Made by a program: the position numbers and the translations under genes | The notes under the pieces: model-generated | The model's database searches: none | What the model was told of the DNA's origin: nothing | Seen by the model: only the letters and a program-made list of their open reading frames with translations | In this document: one piece after another, positions 35,514-46,434 of the stretch | Layout: each line of letters begins with the position of its first letter | Position numbering within the stretch: the first letter of the stretch is position 1 | DNA from: Macrostomum lignano | Lineage: Eukaryota | DNA length: 64,000 bases | Direction: 5' to 3' | Assembly (NCBI GenBank): GCA_002269645.1 | Contig: NIVC01000868.1 | Location: 299,275-363,274 of the forward strand

Positions 35514-35658
35514 CCGGGTCACCACAGCCGGGTCACCACAGCCGGGTCACCACAGCCGGGTCACCACAGCCGGGTCACCACAGCCGGGTCACCACAGCCG
35601 GGTCACCACAGCCGGGTCACCACAGTCGGGTCACCACAGCCGGGTCACCACAGCCGGG
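35514..35658 (-). repeat. 14-bp repeat x about 10 duplicating the ATAT1 last codons and stop
   Basis: Minus-strand unit CCCGGCTGTGGTGA = ...R-L-W-stop. Confidence 0.9.
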
Positions 35659-38600
35659 TGTGGCTGTAGTGCCGCCGCAAGCCCTGCTGGTAGTCGTACG
35701 CTGCTGGCGGGAAGTAGCGCGACTTCATCGCCAGCTCCGGGCCGCCGCCGCCGCCGCCGCCGCCGCCGCCGCCGCCGCCGCCGCCGCCGCCACCGCCGCC
35801 GCCACCGCCGTACAGGGCGGAATTGGCCAGGTTGGGGTTTGAGCGGGTGCGGGACAGCTGCTGCTGCTGCTGCTGCTGGTGCTGGTAGCTGGCGAGGCCT
35901 GGCAGGACGCCGAGCCCCACCGGCTCCGTTGGCGACTGGCGCTGCTGCCGCTGTTGCTGCCGGCTCAGTGATGGCGACCGCCCGAGGCTGCCGGCGTGCT
36001 GCGGCGACGCACGACGAGCAGCGAACGCAGCCTCCATCAGCTCCGCGTCGGAGGCTGCAGTGGGGAGGTCAAGGGTGAGCTCAATTAGTGCAGTTCGGCT
36101 GCAGGATCCTACTATCAGTAGAAATAGCGACAGTTACGAGTAATCCGTAGCCAGAGAGAACAAACAGTGTGCCTCATGTTATCCATGGCGTACACACAGT
36201 GTGCCTCATGTTATCCATGGCGTACACACAGTGTGCCTCATGTTATCCATGGCGTACACACAGTGTGCCTCATGTTATCCATTGTGTACACACAGTGTGC
36301 CTCATGTTATCCATGGTGTACACACAGTGTGCCTCATGTTATCCATGGCGTACACACAGTGTGCCTCATGTTATCCATGGTGTACACACAGTGTGCCTCA
36401 TGTTATCCATGGCGTACACACAGTGTGCCTCATGTTATCCATGGCGTACACACAGTGTGCCTCATGTTATCCATGGTGTACACACAGTGTGCCTCATGTT
36501 ATCCATGGCGTACACACAGTGTGCCTCATGTTATCCATGGTGTACACACAGTGTGCCTCATGTTATCCATGGTGTACACACAGTGTGCCTCATGTTATCC
36601 ATGGTGTACACACAGTGTGCCTCATGTTATCCATGGTGTACACACAGTGTGCCTCATGTTATCCATGGTGTACACACAGTGTGCCTCATGTTATCCATGT
36701 TCACACACTACTCAGTAGTAGCATCAGCGGTAGCACAGTCAGGTCGCGGAAACTCACGCAAGATTTCTTGTCGGTAAGGCGAAGCCGAGTGCCCGCCACC
36801 ACCGACTGGCGGGGTGCCGCCCGTCCGCTGCGGCTGCTGCGGTGGCGGCTGCGGGGACGGAGGTGGGAGCCCCGCTGAGTGCCGACCGGCGCTGCTGGGC
36901 TGCTGCTGCCGCCTCGCCGATGAAGGCGCCTGCCGTGGCGTCTGTCTGGATGACTGAAAGTTGCAGCGGGGTTCCGGAATTTCCTGTGCGCTGGCTTTGG
37001 ATTGAGGACCATGGCTTTGGATTGAGGACCATGGCTTTGGATTGAGGACCATGGCTTTGGATTGAGGACCATGGCTTTGGATTGAGGACCATGGCTTTGG
37101 ATTGAGGACCATGGCTTTGGATTGAAGACCACGGCTTTGGATTGAGGACCATGGCTTTGGATTGAGGACCATGGCTTTGGATTGAGGACCATGGCCTTGG
37201 ATTGAGGACCATGGCTTTGGATTGAGGACCATGGCTTTGGATTGAGGACGATGGCTTTGGATTGAGGACCATGGCCTTGGATTGAGGACCGTGGCTTTGG
37301 ATTGAGGACCATGGCTTTGGATTGAGGACCATGGCTTTGGATTGAGGACCATGGCTTTGGATTGAGGACCATGGCTTTGGATTGAGGACCATGGCTTTGG
37401 ATTGAGGACCATGGCTTTGGATTGAGGACCATGGCTTTGGATTGAGGACCATGGCTTTGGATTGAGGACCATGGCTTTGGATTGAGGACCATGGCTTTGG
37501 ATTGAGGACCATGGCTTTGGATATCGGCGGGATTGAGGATCACAGGTTTTGGATTGAGGACCACTGGATTCAGATTGAGGACTGCAGGATTTGGGTATTG
37601 GCAGGATTTTTAGCGTAATTTTCAGCGTATAGTGAGAAGCGTAATTTTTTAGCTTCTCACCCCAAACACGTACCAAACGCATACCAAACGCATACCAAAC
37701 ACATACCAAACACATACCAAACACGTACCAAACGCATACCAAACACATGCCAAACGCATACCAAACACATACCAAACACATACCAAACACATACCAAACA
37801 CATACCAAACACATACCAAAGACATGCCAAACGCATACCAAACACATACCAAACACATACCAAACGCATACCAAACACATGCCAAACGCATACCAAACAC
37901 ATACCAAACACATACCAAACACATACCAAAGACATGCCAAACGCATACCAAACACATACCAAACACATACCAAACACGTGCCAAACGCATACCAAGCACA
38001 TACCAAACACATACCAAACACATACCAAACACATACCAAACACATACCAAAGACATGCCAAACGCATACCAAACACATACCAAACACATACCAAACACAT
38101 ACCAAACACGTGCCAAACGCATACCAAGCACATACCAAACGCATACCAAGCACATACCAAACGCATACCAAACACATACCATGCACATACCTCTAGCAGC
38201 TCAGTCCTCTGAGACCCCAGCCTGCCCACTCACCGGCAGCAGAGACTTCCGGTCGCCAAGGGTTGCTGATGGAGCTGTCGGTTGAAAAAAACATGCGTTT
38301 TGTGTTAATAAAACATGCAAAATTTGTGTTTAGCATTATTTGGACCAGTCTTTGCAGAAAATTTAATGAGTACTAAACTCACTAGCTAGTTAAAGTAGGA
38401 CTACAGGATATTCTGGTTATTTTCATCATATACTATTTTCAATTCTCTATGACTAACATTCACGCTAATTGTCAATATCAGCATCCAAGCGTCTTGAAGG
38501 CAGCAAGCAGGGCGCTAAGAGACCGCTGTGGGCAATAGGGAGACTGGAGATAATGGGGAAAGACTGGGGAAGGAGATGGGATGGGGAGAGACTGGGGGAA

Positions 38601-44600: not shown

Positions 44601-46434
44601 ACACTGAATGACTGAGGGACAGGGGCTGGAGGACCGGAATGGCACACTGAAATGTCTGAAGGACAGGGGCTGGAGGACCGGAATGGCACACTGAATGTCT
44701 GAAGGACAGGGGCTGGAGGACCGGAATGGCACACTGAATGACTGAGGGACAGGGGCTGGAGGACCGGAATGGCACACTAAATGACTGAGGGACAGGGGCT
44801 AGAGGACCAGAATGGCACACTAAATGACTGAGGGACAGGGGATGGAGGACCGGAATGGCCCACTGAATGACTGAGGGACAGGGGCTGGAGGACCGGAATG
44901 GCCCACTGAATGACTGAGGGACAGGGGATGGAGGACCGGAATGGCCCACTGAATGACTGAGGGACAGGGGCTGGAGGACCGGAATGGCACACTAAATGAC
45001 TGAGGGACAGGGGCTGGAGGACCGGAATGGCACACTGAATGGCTGAGGGACAGGGGCTGGAGGACCGGAATGGCACACTGAATGACTGAGGGACAGGGGC
45101 TGGAGGACCGGAATAGCACACTGAATGGCTGAGAGACAGGGGCTGGAGGACCGGAATGGCAGAACGGTATTGCAATAGCCTGTGGCTTGAGTTATGAGTT
45201 CAACGTGTTCTCTCCCTCCCGCTCTCACCGGGTCTGTCGCGGAAGAAGCCGTGGAACACCACAAAGTTGTTCATCTGCGGGATGCAGTCCTTCAGGCCGT
45301 AGTGCTTCTTGAGAAATCCAGCGAATTTCGGTGACGGCCTGTCGATGGCGAGGTGCACCGGCTCCACCTGTTCCTGCTGCAGGTGAGATGGCAGGTTACC
45401 CTGGACTTAGTCTTGAGTAACTGCCAGCACTAGCAATGGCTACCTACCTGCAACATGTACTCAAATAGAACTTTTCCGTATCCGTGGCGTTGCCGGGACT
45501 CGTGAACGTAGAAGTCCAGGACGCAGAGCGGCTCCATCTCGTGCTGCTTTCCCAGCATATCGTAAACAAACAGCTTTTTGCGGCCCATCTTCAGGATGCC
45601 AACTACCGCACCCTGCATGCTGGAAGGGTCCGCTTGAGTCTTGAAAAAGTCTTGGCACTTGAAAAATTGAAAAATTCAAATCAAACTATCAAGCACCAAT
45701 ATGCAGGAAAATAAGCAACGACTCACTTATTTGCAAAAGCATCCTTCAAGACGTACAGTCGATGATCTGAATATTGCAGGCGCTTGAAGCTGGTTATTGC
45801 ATTTGGCAAGGCCTGGGCCTGCAGATATTTTTTAGGATAAAATTAGCTGAAAGTCTTTAATGAGGTAAGTTTTGAATATTGGTTCTCTAACTTACTTTTC
45901 CAGATGCGATTCCCATGTTGTCAATTACTTGCATTAGGTTGCTTCGATGCGAGTCATAGCTAAAAATTGGACATAGTTTATCATCAATGTTGGTTCAAAG
46001 CCAGAGGGTTGAAATGTCTGCTTTATTATGCTTTGTTTTACAAATTAATGTGAAAATTTATTGTGACTATGTAATTTTTTAAGATTTCGCACTAATAATA
46101 TCAAAGAAGCATTTATGCCAATGAGGCACATGTTTAATCTTCTTGCAATACAATAATAATTACTTAAAACAACAAATCGCATTTAACAATGTAACATGTA
46201 AAAACTTTTACATGTATATTTATGGTAGCCATAAAAACTCCTAAATTTTTTAAATACGCTCGTAATCAACTATATCACTGTGTTTAATTAAACAGAAAAC
46301 TTCTACATTTGATCGCTGACATTGAATTTTTTATTTTACCTAGAGCGTTGAAACTTTTGCAGATTGCTGAATGAACTGTCAATTATGGTTATTTCGTCAG
46401 GCAGCAATGGATTTAAGTTAAACGCAAATTCCAT
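35645..46434 (-). CDS. ATAT1: Alpha-tubulin N-acetyltransferase 1 (alphaTAT1/MEC-17), 9 exons, about 442 aa
   Basis: Minus-strand exons 46434-46340, 45959-45896, 45818-45727, 45619-45448, 45376-45229, 44139-44059, 38274-38234, 36983-36758 and 36054-35645 are all GT-AG and phase-compatible (1329 nt). Protein [11 protein letters not shown]...[16 protein letters not shown]...[11 protein letters not shown]...[19 protein letters not shown]...[10 protein letters not shown]...[13 protein letters not shown]. Residues equivalent to human Q58, C120 and D157 are present. Ends [10 protein letters not shown]. Catalytic exons 1-5 are near certain; exons 7-9 rest on phase and the C-terminal motif. Confidence 0.9.
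36163..36707. repeat. 32-bp minisatellite (ATAT1 intron 8)
   Basis: Unit GTGTGCCTCATGTTATCCATGG(C/T)GTACACACA. Confidence 0.95.
36994..38188. repeat. 20-bp (36994-37522) and 11-bp (37664-38188) arrays in ATAT1 intron 7
   Basis: GGATTGAGGACCATGGCTTT; CATACCAAACA. Confidence 0.95.
38575..39335. repeat. Purine/G-tract-rich about 28-bp minisatellite upstream of the nested tubulin
   Basis: Unit GGGAGAGACTTGTGGGAGGAGATGGGAT. Confidence 0.92.
39618..43799 (+). CDS. Divergent alpha-tubulin-like protein, 4 exons, about 550 aa, nested antisense in ATAT1 intron 6
   Basis: Exons 39618-39629, 40279-40787, 41935-42292 and 43026-43799 are phase-compatible (1653 nt). Motifs [52 protein letters not shown] and [15 protein letters not shown] and [13 protein letters not shown] are alpha-type rather than beta-type. 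AATAAA at 43914-43919. Confidence 0.9.
39928..40259. repeat. (GACA)n microsatellite (tubulin intron 1)
   Basis: Direct reading. Confidence 0.95.
40935..41697. repeat. 28-30-bp minisatellite (tubulin intron 2)
   Basis: Unit GGAGTGACACTATAGAGTATGCCATGCT. Confidence 0.95.
42301..42870. repeat. 32-bp then 33-bp minisatellites (tubulin intron 3)
   Basis: GACAGACTTTGTAGACTACGCTGTGCTGGAGT; GACAGGCTCTGTTGAGATTCGCCATGCTGGAGT. Confidence 0.93.
44255..45161. repeat. 43-bp minisatellite x about 21 (ATAT1 intron 5)
   Basis: Unit GGACCGGAATGGCACACTGAATGACTGAGGGACAGGGGCTGGA. Confidence 0.95.

Follow-up and report, generated by a model that had tools for sequence, protein, structure and literature searches.

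A window of 64,000 nucleotides from the genome of the free-living flatworm Macrostomum lignano (contig NIVC01000868.1 of assembly GCA_002269645.1, Mlig_3_7), to whose positions all coordinates given here refer, harbours the gene of the alpha-tubulin acetyltransferase ATAT1 and, wholly within one intron of this gene and on the opposite strand, a second gene which encodes an alpha-tubulin-like protein. This anatomy, an ATAT1 host with an antisense intronic alpha-tubulin-like guest, we regard as practically certain. The section from 29618 to 53799 is identical (100%) to positions 328892-353073 of NIVC01000868.1, and the guanine-plus-cytosine (GC) content of the region amounts to about 54% with AT-rich patches.

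ATAT1 extends on the minus strand from 46434 to 35645 and comprises nine exons. Every junction is of the GT-AG type and in phase (exons 6 to 9 showing phases 1, 0, 1 and 0), leading to an open reading frame of 442 amino acids which terminates with HTRLW and a stop codon. Exon 1 (46340-46434), with its ATG at 46434, begins the part of the protein which matches the Pfam family PF05301 and which aligns from residue 1 of the solved alphaTAT1 structures onwards. It is followed by exon 2 (45896-45959) and exon 3 (45727-45818), which show 98% and 100% identity, respectively, in both of two homeologous copies of the locus, by exon 4 (45448-45619), which encodes the catalytic core, and by exon 5 (45229-45376), within which the Mec-17 domain ends. 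Exon 6 (44059-44139), whose donor C/GTGAGT is located at 44059/44058, is present in the GenBank model BOX15_Mlig002856g1, as is the peptide spanning the junction of exon 6 and exon 7 (38234-38274). Between these two exons lies intron 6 (38275-44058), whose 5,784 bp house the entire tubulin gene. Exon 8 (36758-36983) offers two in-frame alternative acceptors, one of them 30 nt further in (36953), which is used by the annotated mRNA of BOX15_Mlig002856g1, and the other 42 nt further in, which is used by another protein model (P0245). The last exon, exon 9 (35645-36054), ends with HYSHTRLW and the stop codon TGA at 35645-35647.

The tubulin gene occupies positions 39618-43799 of the plus strand and consists of four exons joined in phase by GT-AG introns, which together encode 550 amino acids. 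Exon 1 (39618-39629) contributes no more than the residues MLGK, in agreement with the GenBank model BOX15_Mlig015062g1. Exon 2 (40279-40787) encodes the GTPase domain including the motifs GQAG and GGGTGSG as well as Lys41, while exon 3 (41935-42292) contains VEPYN and DNEA and, at the T7 loop and helix H8, the sequence NATLAD where alpha-tubulin has NVDLTE. Exon 4 (43026-43799) provides the C-terminal domain and a tail composed of SGLDG and GPGSKSPGS repeats, with the stop codon at 43797-43799. BOX15_Mlig015062g1, which is the GenBank model of the very tubulin present in the window, comprises 500 amino acids and omits 50 residues of the tail which are encoded in the genome. There is no overlap between tubulin and ATAT1 exons, and the polyadenylation (poly(A)) signals of the tubulin gene, which reach to position 43919, are likewise situated within intron 6.

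On its 5' side, the tubulin gene is preceded by a putative promoter and 5' untranslated region (UTR) at 39334-39617, a function assigned from the sequence of this plus-strand segment between a 28-bp minisatellite and the ATG; exon 7 of ATAT1 is located 1.3 kb upstream of the ATG. Some 47 nt ahead of the ATG (within 39560-39617), the segment contains a ttgcag acceptor, which could serve as a candidate site for spliced-leader trans-splicing. The reported share of trans-spliced genes in M. lignano is 38.8%. On its 3' side, a spacer of 259 bp (43800-44058) with a GC content of 31% separates the tubulin stop codon from exon 6 of ATAT1. On its plus strand, ATTAAA (43876) and AATAAA (43914-43919) provide two poly(A) signals, the latter of which lies 139 bp before the exon-6 donor of ATAT1. 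In addition, an AATAAA is found on the minus strand at 43821-43816 which, together with an in-frame stop met upon read-through of exon 6, makes a short ATAT1 isoform ending with KKASH possible. A preliminary description of this DNA, made from its sequence alone, had placed exons 6 to 9 of ATAT1 at these positions with in-phase joins and an HTRLW end, had recognised a complete antisense alpha-tubulin gene of four exons within a 5.8-kb intron 6 and had put its AATAAA about 140 bp from the ATAT1 donor. The gene model bears out all of these assignments.

The identity of the host gene, as proposed earlier, is borne out by domain and structure matches. Residues 9-186 of the encoded protein match Acetyltransf_16/Mec-17 (PF05301) over profile positions 2-173 of 173 with an E-value of 2.7e-68 (Pfam), and residues 1-189 match the solved alphaTAT1 structure 4hkf_A with an E-value of 6.2e-58. 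In the alignment with the solved alphaTAT1 the stretches KAQ, EPLC(V/I)LDFY(V/I)HE and DRPS are conserved as identities; we take them to hold the active-site residues Q58, C120 and D157 (human numbering). alphaTAT1/MEC-17 acetylates Lys40 (K40) of alpha-tubulin. We would like to note that the PDB entries 8y9f, 8yaj, 8yal and 8yar each contain an enzyme-substrate complex of Alpha-tubulin N-acetyltransferase 2 with Tubulin alpha-3 chain. The GenBank protein BOX15_Mlig002856g1 (415 amino acids), encoded by one of the homeologous copies, matches our ATAT1 model over its full length (100%) with an identity of 92%, the sole differences being the exon-8 acceptor and the longer Gln and Gly runs of the copy studied here. 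The Gly run is encoded by a (GCC)n run in exon 9 (35740-35815, minus strand) and comprises 23 residues versus 7 in BOX15_Mlig002856g1. A poly-Gln run close to it likewise varies in length.

The C-terminus of ATAT1 deserves separate consideration as it bears on the affiliation of exons 7 to 9. The last eight residues, HYSHTRLW, are exactly the C-terminus of a scallop ATAT1 and of a transcript from the Logan collection. The latter was rejected as a possible flatworm orthologue as its sequence resembles scallop ATAT1, and it was used for the C-terminal motif only. Endings of the type xHT(R/K)(L/P)W also occur in the brachiopod Lingula (SHTKLW), the nemertean Tubulanus (HHTKLW) and, as NTRPW, in shark and coelacanth. 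Since the reading frame ends with the conserved HYSHTRLW and since BOX15_Mlig002856g1 holds the junction peptide of exons 6 and 7, exons 7 to 9 belong to ATAT1. Directly at this C-terminus starts a minisatellite with a 14-bp unit (CCCGGCTGTGGTGA; 35511-35659, minus strand; 10.6 copies), the first unit of which constitutes the last ATAT1 codons. In this unit CCCGGCTGTGGTGA reads CGG CTG TGG TGA, i.e. R-L-W-stop, while the later units, which remain untranslated, begin the 3' UTR of ATAT1. The 10.6 copies of the window compare with about 3 on contig NIVC01001402.1 (approximately 19470-19520) and about 12 on contig NIVC01001360.1 (approximately 5400-5570). In effect, the conserved C-terminal motif of ATAT1 is amplified as a minisatellite of which the first copy alone is translated.

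The two contigs just mentioned carry two further copies of the locus which display the same collinear structure and the same minisatellites. Between the copies, exons are 94-100% and introns 84-94% identical. The copies are recent within-species duplicates with synonymous divergences (dS) of 0.02-0.06, and the presence of the same nesting in all three indicates that the arrangement predates the recent genome duplication. The M. lignano genome is known to be highly repetitive and redundant (PMC5730564). On both other contigs both genes are annotated in GenBank, with ATAT1 spanning the antisense tubulin gene; this annotation was built from RNA-seq by means of StringTie, TACO and TBONE (PMC5730564). 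On NIVC01000868.1, ATAT1 is intact within the window yet lacks a GenBank annotation, in contrast to the two homeologous contigs. Older models of the locus of the UniRef/WormBase type (758 and 788 amino acids) are chimeric and include translated antisense sequence of the tubulin gene. Given the near identity of the exons among the copies, transcription cannot be traced to any single one of them.

Calculated from 1,419 aligned coding bases, the ratio of nonsynonymous to synonymous divergence (dN/dS) of the tubulin gene between the copies amounts to 0.06-0.10 at a dS of 0.03-0.06, while that of ATAT1 amounts to 0.23-0.37, a value based on few substitutions. The tubulin gene is an intact live gene under strong purifying selection, and ATAT1 is likewise intact and subject to selective constraint. 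The preliminary description had named outcomes that would have spoken against the nesting, namely ATAT1 transcripts which all end ahead of the tubulin gene, exons 7 to 9 being part of another gene, and a tubulin gene devoid of transcription. None of them is encountered: for two homeologous copies, the RNA-seq-based annotation includes an ATAT1 mRNA spliced across the tubulin gene, the last exon encodes the conserved ATAT1 C-terminus, and the tubulin gene, which the annotation lists as transcribed, evolves under purifying selection.

The protein encoded by the nested gene matches, beyond the curated cut-offs of both families, Tubulin (PF00091, E-value 2.3e-51, residues 6-212) and Tubulin_C (PF03953, E-value 1.4e-10, residues 263-385). 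Its top 60 matches among solved structures are alpha chains without exception (E-values of about 1e-95), in accordance with the earlier designation of the gene as alpha-tubulin. In BLASTP comparisons with hand-typed reference sequences, it scores 286 bits with alpha-tubulin (38% identity), 186 bits with beta-tubulin (28%) and 150 bits with gamma-tubulin (25%). Its S9-S10 region aligns free of gaps to the alpha-type loop, and the residues involved in nucleotide binding are kept as invariant columns (G11-Q12-A13-G14, G140-G146, N100, D203-N204-E205-A206, Y224 and N228). Judged from these sequence features, the nested tubulin is derived from alpha-tubulin.

Clearly, however, it has diverged far from this origin. 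Among 258 near-invariant positions, defined as alignment columns in which 17 or more of 18 canonical alpha-tubulins agree, 127 are kept while 131 are changed. At the T7 loop and H8, NVDLTEF is replaced by NATLADI, which corresponds to the exchanges D251T and E254D. In alpha-tubulin, D251 and E254 of T7/H8 trigger GTP hydrolysis on the beta subunit of the neighbouring dimer. The nested tubulin furthermore lacks W407 and the GEGMEEGEF sequence, and it shows a deletion of about ten residues around 326-335, near H10. The acidic tail, whose last residue in alpha-tubulins is usually Tyr, is gone. Instead, there is a net basic tail of SGLDG and GPGSKSPGS repeats which ends with YYEE and which is encoded by minisatellites at 43548-43790 of the plus strand, SGLDG units being followed by Ser-Pro-rich GPGSKSPGS-like units. 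The three copies of the locus and the models in GenBank differ in the number of these repeats, resulting in proteins of 500, 505, 550 and 560 amino acids. As to the acetylation site, Lys41 pairs with K40 in the pairwise alignments produced by HMMER and BLASTP, while the multiple alignment is ambiguous there. The K40 loop is shortened and its flanks differ (GPWKACA versus PSDKTIG). As the context of the K40 loop has been rewritten, the presence of the lysine constitutes weak evidence for acetylation.

A search of two very large protein collections, one of 5.8 billion and the other of 1.8 billion representatives, for tubulin relatives outside M. lignano returned none of more than approximately 41% identity, a negative which is uninformative as to congeners because the search with ATAT1 did not return any other Macrostomum species either. 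The AlphaFold2 model of the nested tubulin, calculated from an alignment of 19 sequences, reaches a mean predicted local distance difference test (pLDDT) score of 49.7, with residues 236-505 below 50. Since this confidence is too low, no structural inference was drawn from the model. The extreme divergence of the protein, which affects the longitudinal interface as well as the tail, makes its entry into normal microtubules uncertain. Its strong constraint, combined with the loss of D251 and E254, W407 and the acidic tail, points to a role that is specialised or non-canonical.

Almost all introns of the two genes contain a distinct tandem array of their own, made up of 17 to 83 copies, which recurs in the homeologous copies at the same place but with another copy number. 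Within the part of the locus covered by ATAT1 exons 7 to 9 and the introns between them, these arrays have units of 32 bp (36160-36699), 20 bp (36992-37522) and 11 bp (37662-38191). Intron 6 contributes an array with a 28-bp unit (38556-39333), which immediately precedes the putative tubulin promoter. The three introns of the tubulin gene contain units of 4 bp (39929-40259), 28/58 bp (40933-41701) and 32-33 bp (42301-42872), and an array with a 43-bp unit (44254-45161) is found between exons 6 and 5 of ATAT1. Simple and tandem repeats make up 15% of the M. lignano genome (PMC5730564), and the minisatellites in nearly all introns of the present locus fit this published share (PMC5730564).

A scan of the region from 34 to 48 kb with Rfam revealed no RNA families. 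Just upstream of ATAT1, at 46860-47000, an unusual stretch of alternating G-runs and C-runs lies in AT-rich surroundings; it may represent the end of a repeat element. The remainder of the window contains a forkhead-domain gene with its domain split between two exons (3478-6113, plus strand), a TRPC-like channel gene with ankyrin repeats, TRP_2 and Ion_trans domains (11355-15000, plus strand), a gene of a sugar transporter of the major facilitator superfamily (29244-33000, plus strand), which flanks ATAT1 in both homeologous copies too, and a gene with a Put_Phosphatase domain (PF06888; 57122-58144, minus strand).

In its geometry the locus resembles well-known cases such as Pcp in Gart of Drosophila, OMG, EVI2A and EVI2B in human NF1, and F8A in F8, in which, as here, a complete opposite-strand gene resides in one intron of the host while the flanking host exons are spliced together. 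In those cases, however, host and guest are normally unrelated, whereas the present guest is a paralogue of the substrate of the host enzyme. Unlike those guests, moreover, that of M. lignano is itself interrupted by three introns, all of them filled with minisatellites. A known example of a nested pair from one biochemical pathway is the cholinergic locus, in which VAChT is located within the first intron of ChAT. There, both genes have the same orientation, share a promoter and a 5' exon, are co-expressed and are conserved from nematodes to mammals. The M. lignano pair, in contrast, is antisense, displays no shared exon, and its conservation is shown only within one species.

Compared to alphaTAT1/MEC-17 proteins (PF05301) in general, the host gene product is ordinary, with a full catalytic domain, a low-complexity C-terminal half and the HT(R/K)(L/P)W ending. 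What is unusual about the host is the content of intron 6, the poly-Gly run of 23 residues and the 3' UTR minisatellite seeded by the last codons. With divergent alpha isotypes such as human TUBAL3, Drosophila alphaTub67C and C. elegans MEC-12, the K40-bearing partner of MEC-17, the nested tubulin shares the alpha origin, the GTP motifs (GQAG, GGGTGSG and the equivalents of N101, N206, Y224 and N228) and the length of the S9-S10 loop; in pairwise alignments, a Lys also pairs with K40. Unlike those isotypes, however, it is only 38-41% identical to any alpha-tubulin, carries D251T and E254D, has lost W407 and ends with a non-acidic tail rich in Gly, Pro, Ser and Lys.

How host and guest relate to each other functionally allows for several explanations, and the one which we favour, though with no more than fair confidence, is that the locus contains two independent transcription units whose pairing is possibly coincidental. 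The tubulin gene would form a unit separate from ATAT1, with its own upstream region and with its own poly(A) signals in the AT-rich spacer of 259 bp. Intron 6 probably received a tubulin copy or was the place of its origin, and the copy would later have evolved fast into a specialised protein. Coupling between the two genes, if there is any, would then be of the kind generic to antisense intronic nesting, comprising a shared chromatin neighbourhood and possible interference between polymerases, and most likely the match of host and guest is not an engineered module. Intronic nested genes of animals are mostly located on the opposite strand and functionally unrelated to their host, antisense nesting being the commonest form. 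Several observations nonetheless weigh against mere coincidence. Among tens of thousands of possible hosts, it is very improbable that a tubulin gene should end up in precisely that gene family whose product modifies alpha-tubulin, although this comparison is a post hoc one. A lysine aligns with K40, albeit in an otherwise rewritten loop, and all three copies have preserved the gene pair intact. Co-regulation or mutual exclusion of the two genes is conceivable. Beyond that, ATAT1 is unannotated on NIVC01000868.1, and the RNA-seq-based evidence of its transcription refers to the two other copies. The thought that the nesting itself is deceptive, either because the contig is misassembled, because the tubulin gene is a decaying pseudogene or because exons 7 to 9 belong to another gene, draws on the repetitive and redundant nature of the genome, on the chimeric older UniRef models and on the missing ATAT1 annotation of this contig. 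Yet the same collinear structure occurs on three separate contigs, the tubulin frame is intact with the low dN/dS given above, the C-terminus encoded by the last exon is the one conserved in ATAT1, and exons 6 and 7 are spliced together in the annotated mRNA. We therefore consider such an artefact extremely improbable and reject the pseudogene, the misassembly and the foreign origin of exons 7 to 9 on the strength of the dN/dS, the three contigs and the C-terminal motif.

The two remaining explanations attribute a function to the pairing. Both were raised as possibilities in the preliminary description; whereas its anatomy and gene identities prove correct, these functional proposals are so far unsupported. 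If transcription of the tubulin gene collided with that of ATAT1, it could lower the amount of full-length ATAT1 or favour the short isoform, leading to mutually exclusive expression of the two genes. Such an antisense interference switch would be in line with the convergent orientation and the short distance between the tubulin stop codon and exon 6, with the fact that the tubulin gene occupies 72% of intron 6, and with the minus-strand AATAAA which, along with the in-frame read-through stop, might give rise to the short isoform. Against this, the annotation from whole-animal RNA-seq includes the tubulin mRNA as well as a spliced ATAT1 mRNA of full length and, as is generally known, host and nested genes of animals are not anti-correlated as a rule, so that we hold a switch of this kind to be unlikely. 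Alternatively, host and guest might form a module of enzyme and substrate, in which the nested tubulin is dedicated to ATAT1 and the nesting keeps both genes co-expressed in one chromatin domain, for instance in cells whose microtubules are very stable, such as the aflagellate sperm or ciliated cells. The biochemical relation of the two products, the alignment of Lys41 with K40, the intact motifs of the ATAT1 catalytic domain, and the constraint on both genes together with the retention of the arrangement in three copies all speak for such a module. The three copies are recent, however, and their agreement thus says little on long-term retention; the opposite orientation provides no shared promoter, and the context of the K40 loop differs. 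Furthermore, alphaTAT1 acts in the lumen of the microtubule lattice, and with half of the near-invariant alpha positions changed the incorporation of the nested tubulin into a lattice is uncertain. Expression lookups in the readable supplements of published studies, too, gave no match for the gene identifiers: Mlig015062, Mlig020438, Mlig020544 and Mlig002856 are found neither in those of PMC5730564, PMC7336406, PMC5946080, 10.1101/167346, PMC10786194 and PMC12896417 nor by a full-text literature search. Taken together, this renders the module rather improbable. In its most specific form, the divergent tubulin would be acetylated by alphaTAT1 at Lys41 within a very stable array such as the cortical microtubules of the aflagellate sperm, its expression being tied to that of the enzyme via a shared chromatin domain or a polymerase-collision switch, a proposal to which we assign a low probability indeed. 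The two independent transcription units hence remain our preferred explanation.

The preliminary description had supposed the arrangement to be undescribed. As far as the searchable literature is concerned this holds, since no paper describing the nesting of a tubulin gene in ATAT1 was found, whereas the overlapping gene models as such are already public in GenBank. The finding at present is a well-documented curiosity which is implicit in public annotation and traceable only within one species, and it exposes an annotation gap, as ATAT1 is missing on NIVC01000868.1. The locus is a new example of a host-nested gene pair which is characterised by an unusual relation between host and guest and by an unusual guest. 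Even without any coupling, the nested gene is still notable as an alpha-derived, strongly constrained tubulin gene whose product has lost D251 and E254, W407 and the acidic tail. If, on the other hand, the coupling proved to be functional, the locus would be a rare instance in which the gene of an enzyme harbours, within an intron, a paralogue of the enzyme's own substrate, and it would offer a natural handle on the role of K40 acetylation in a flatworm amenable to transgenesis and RNA interference.

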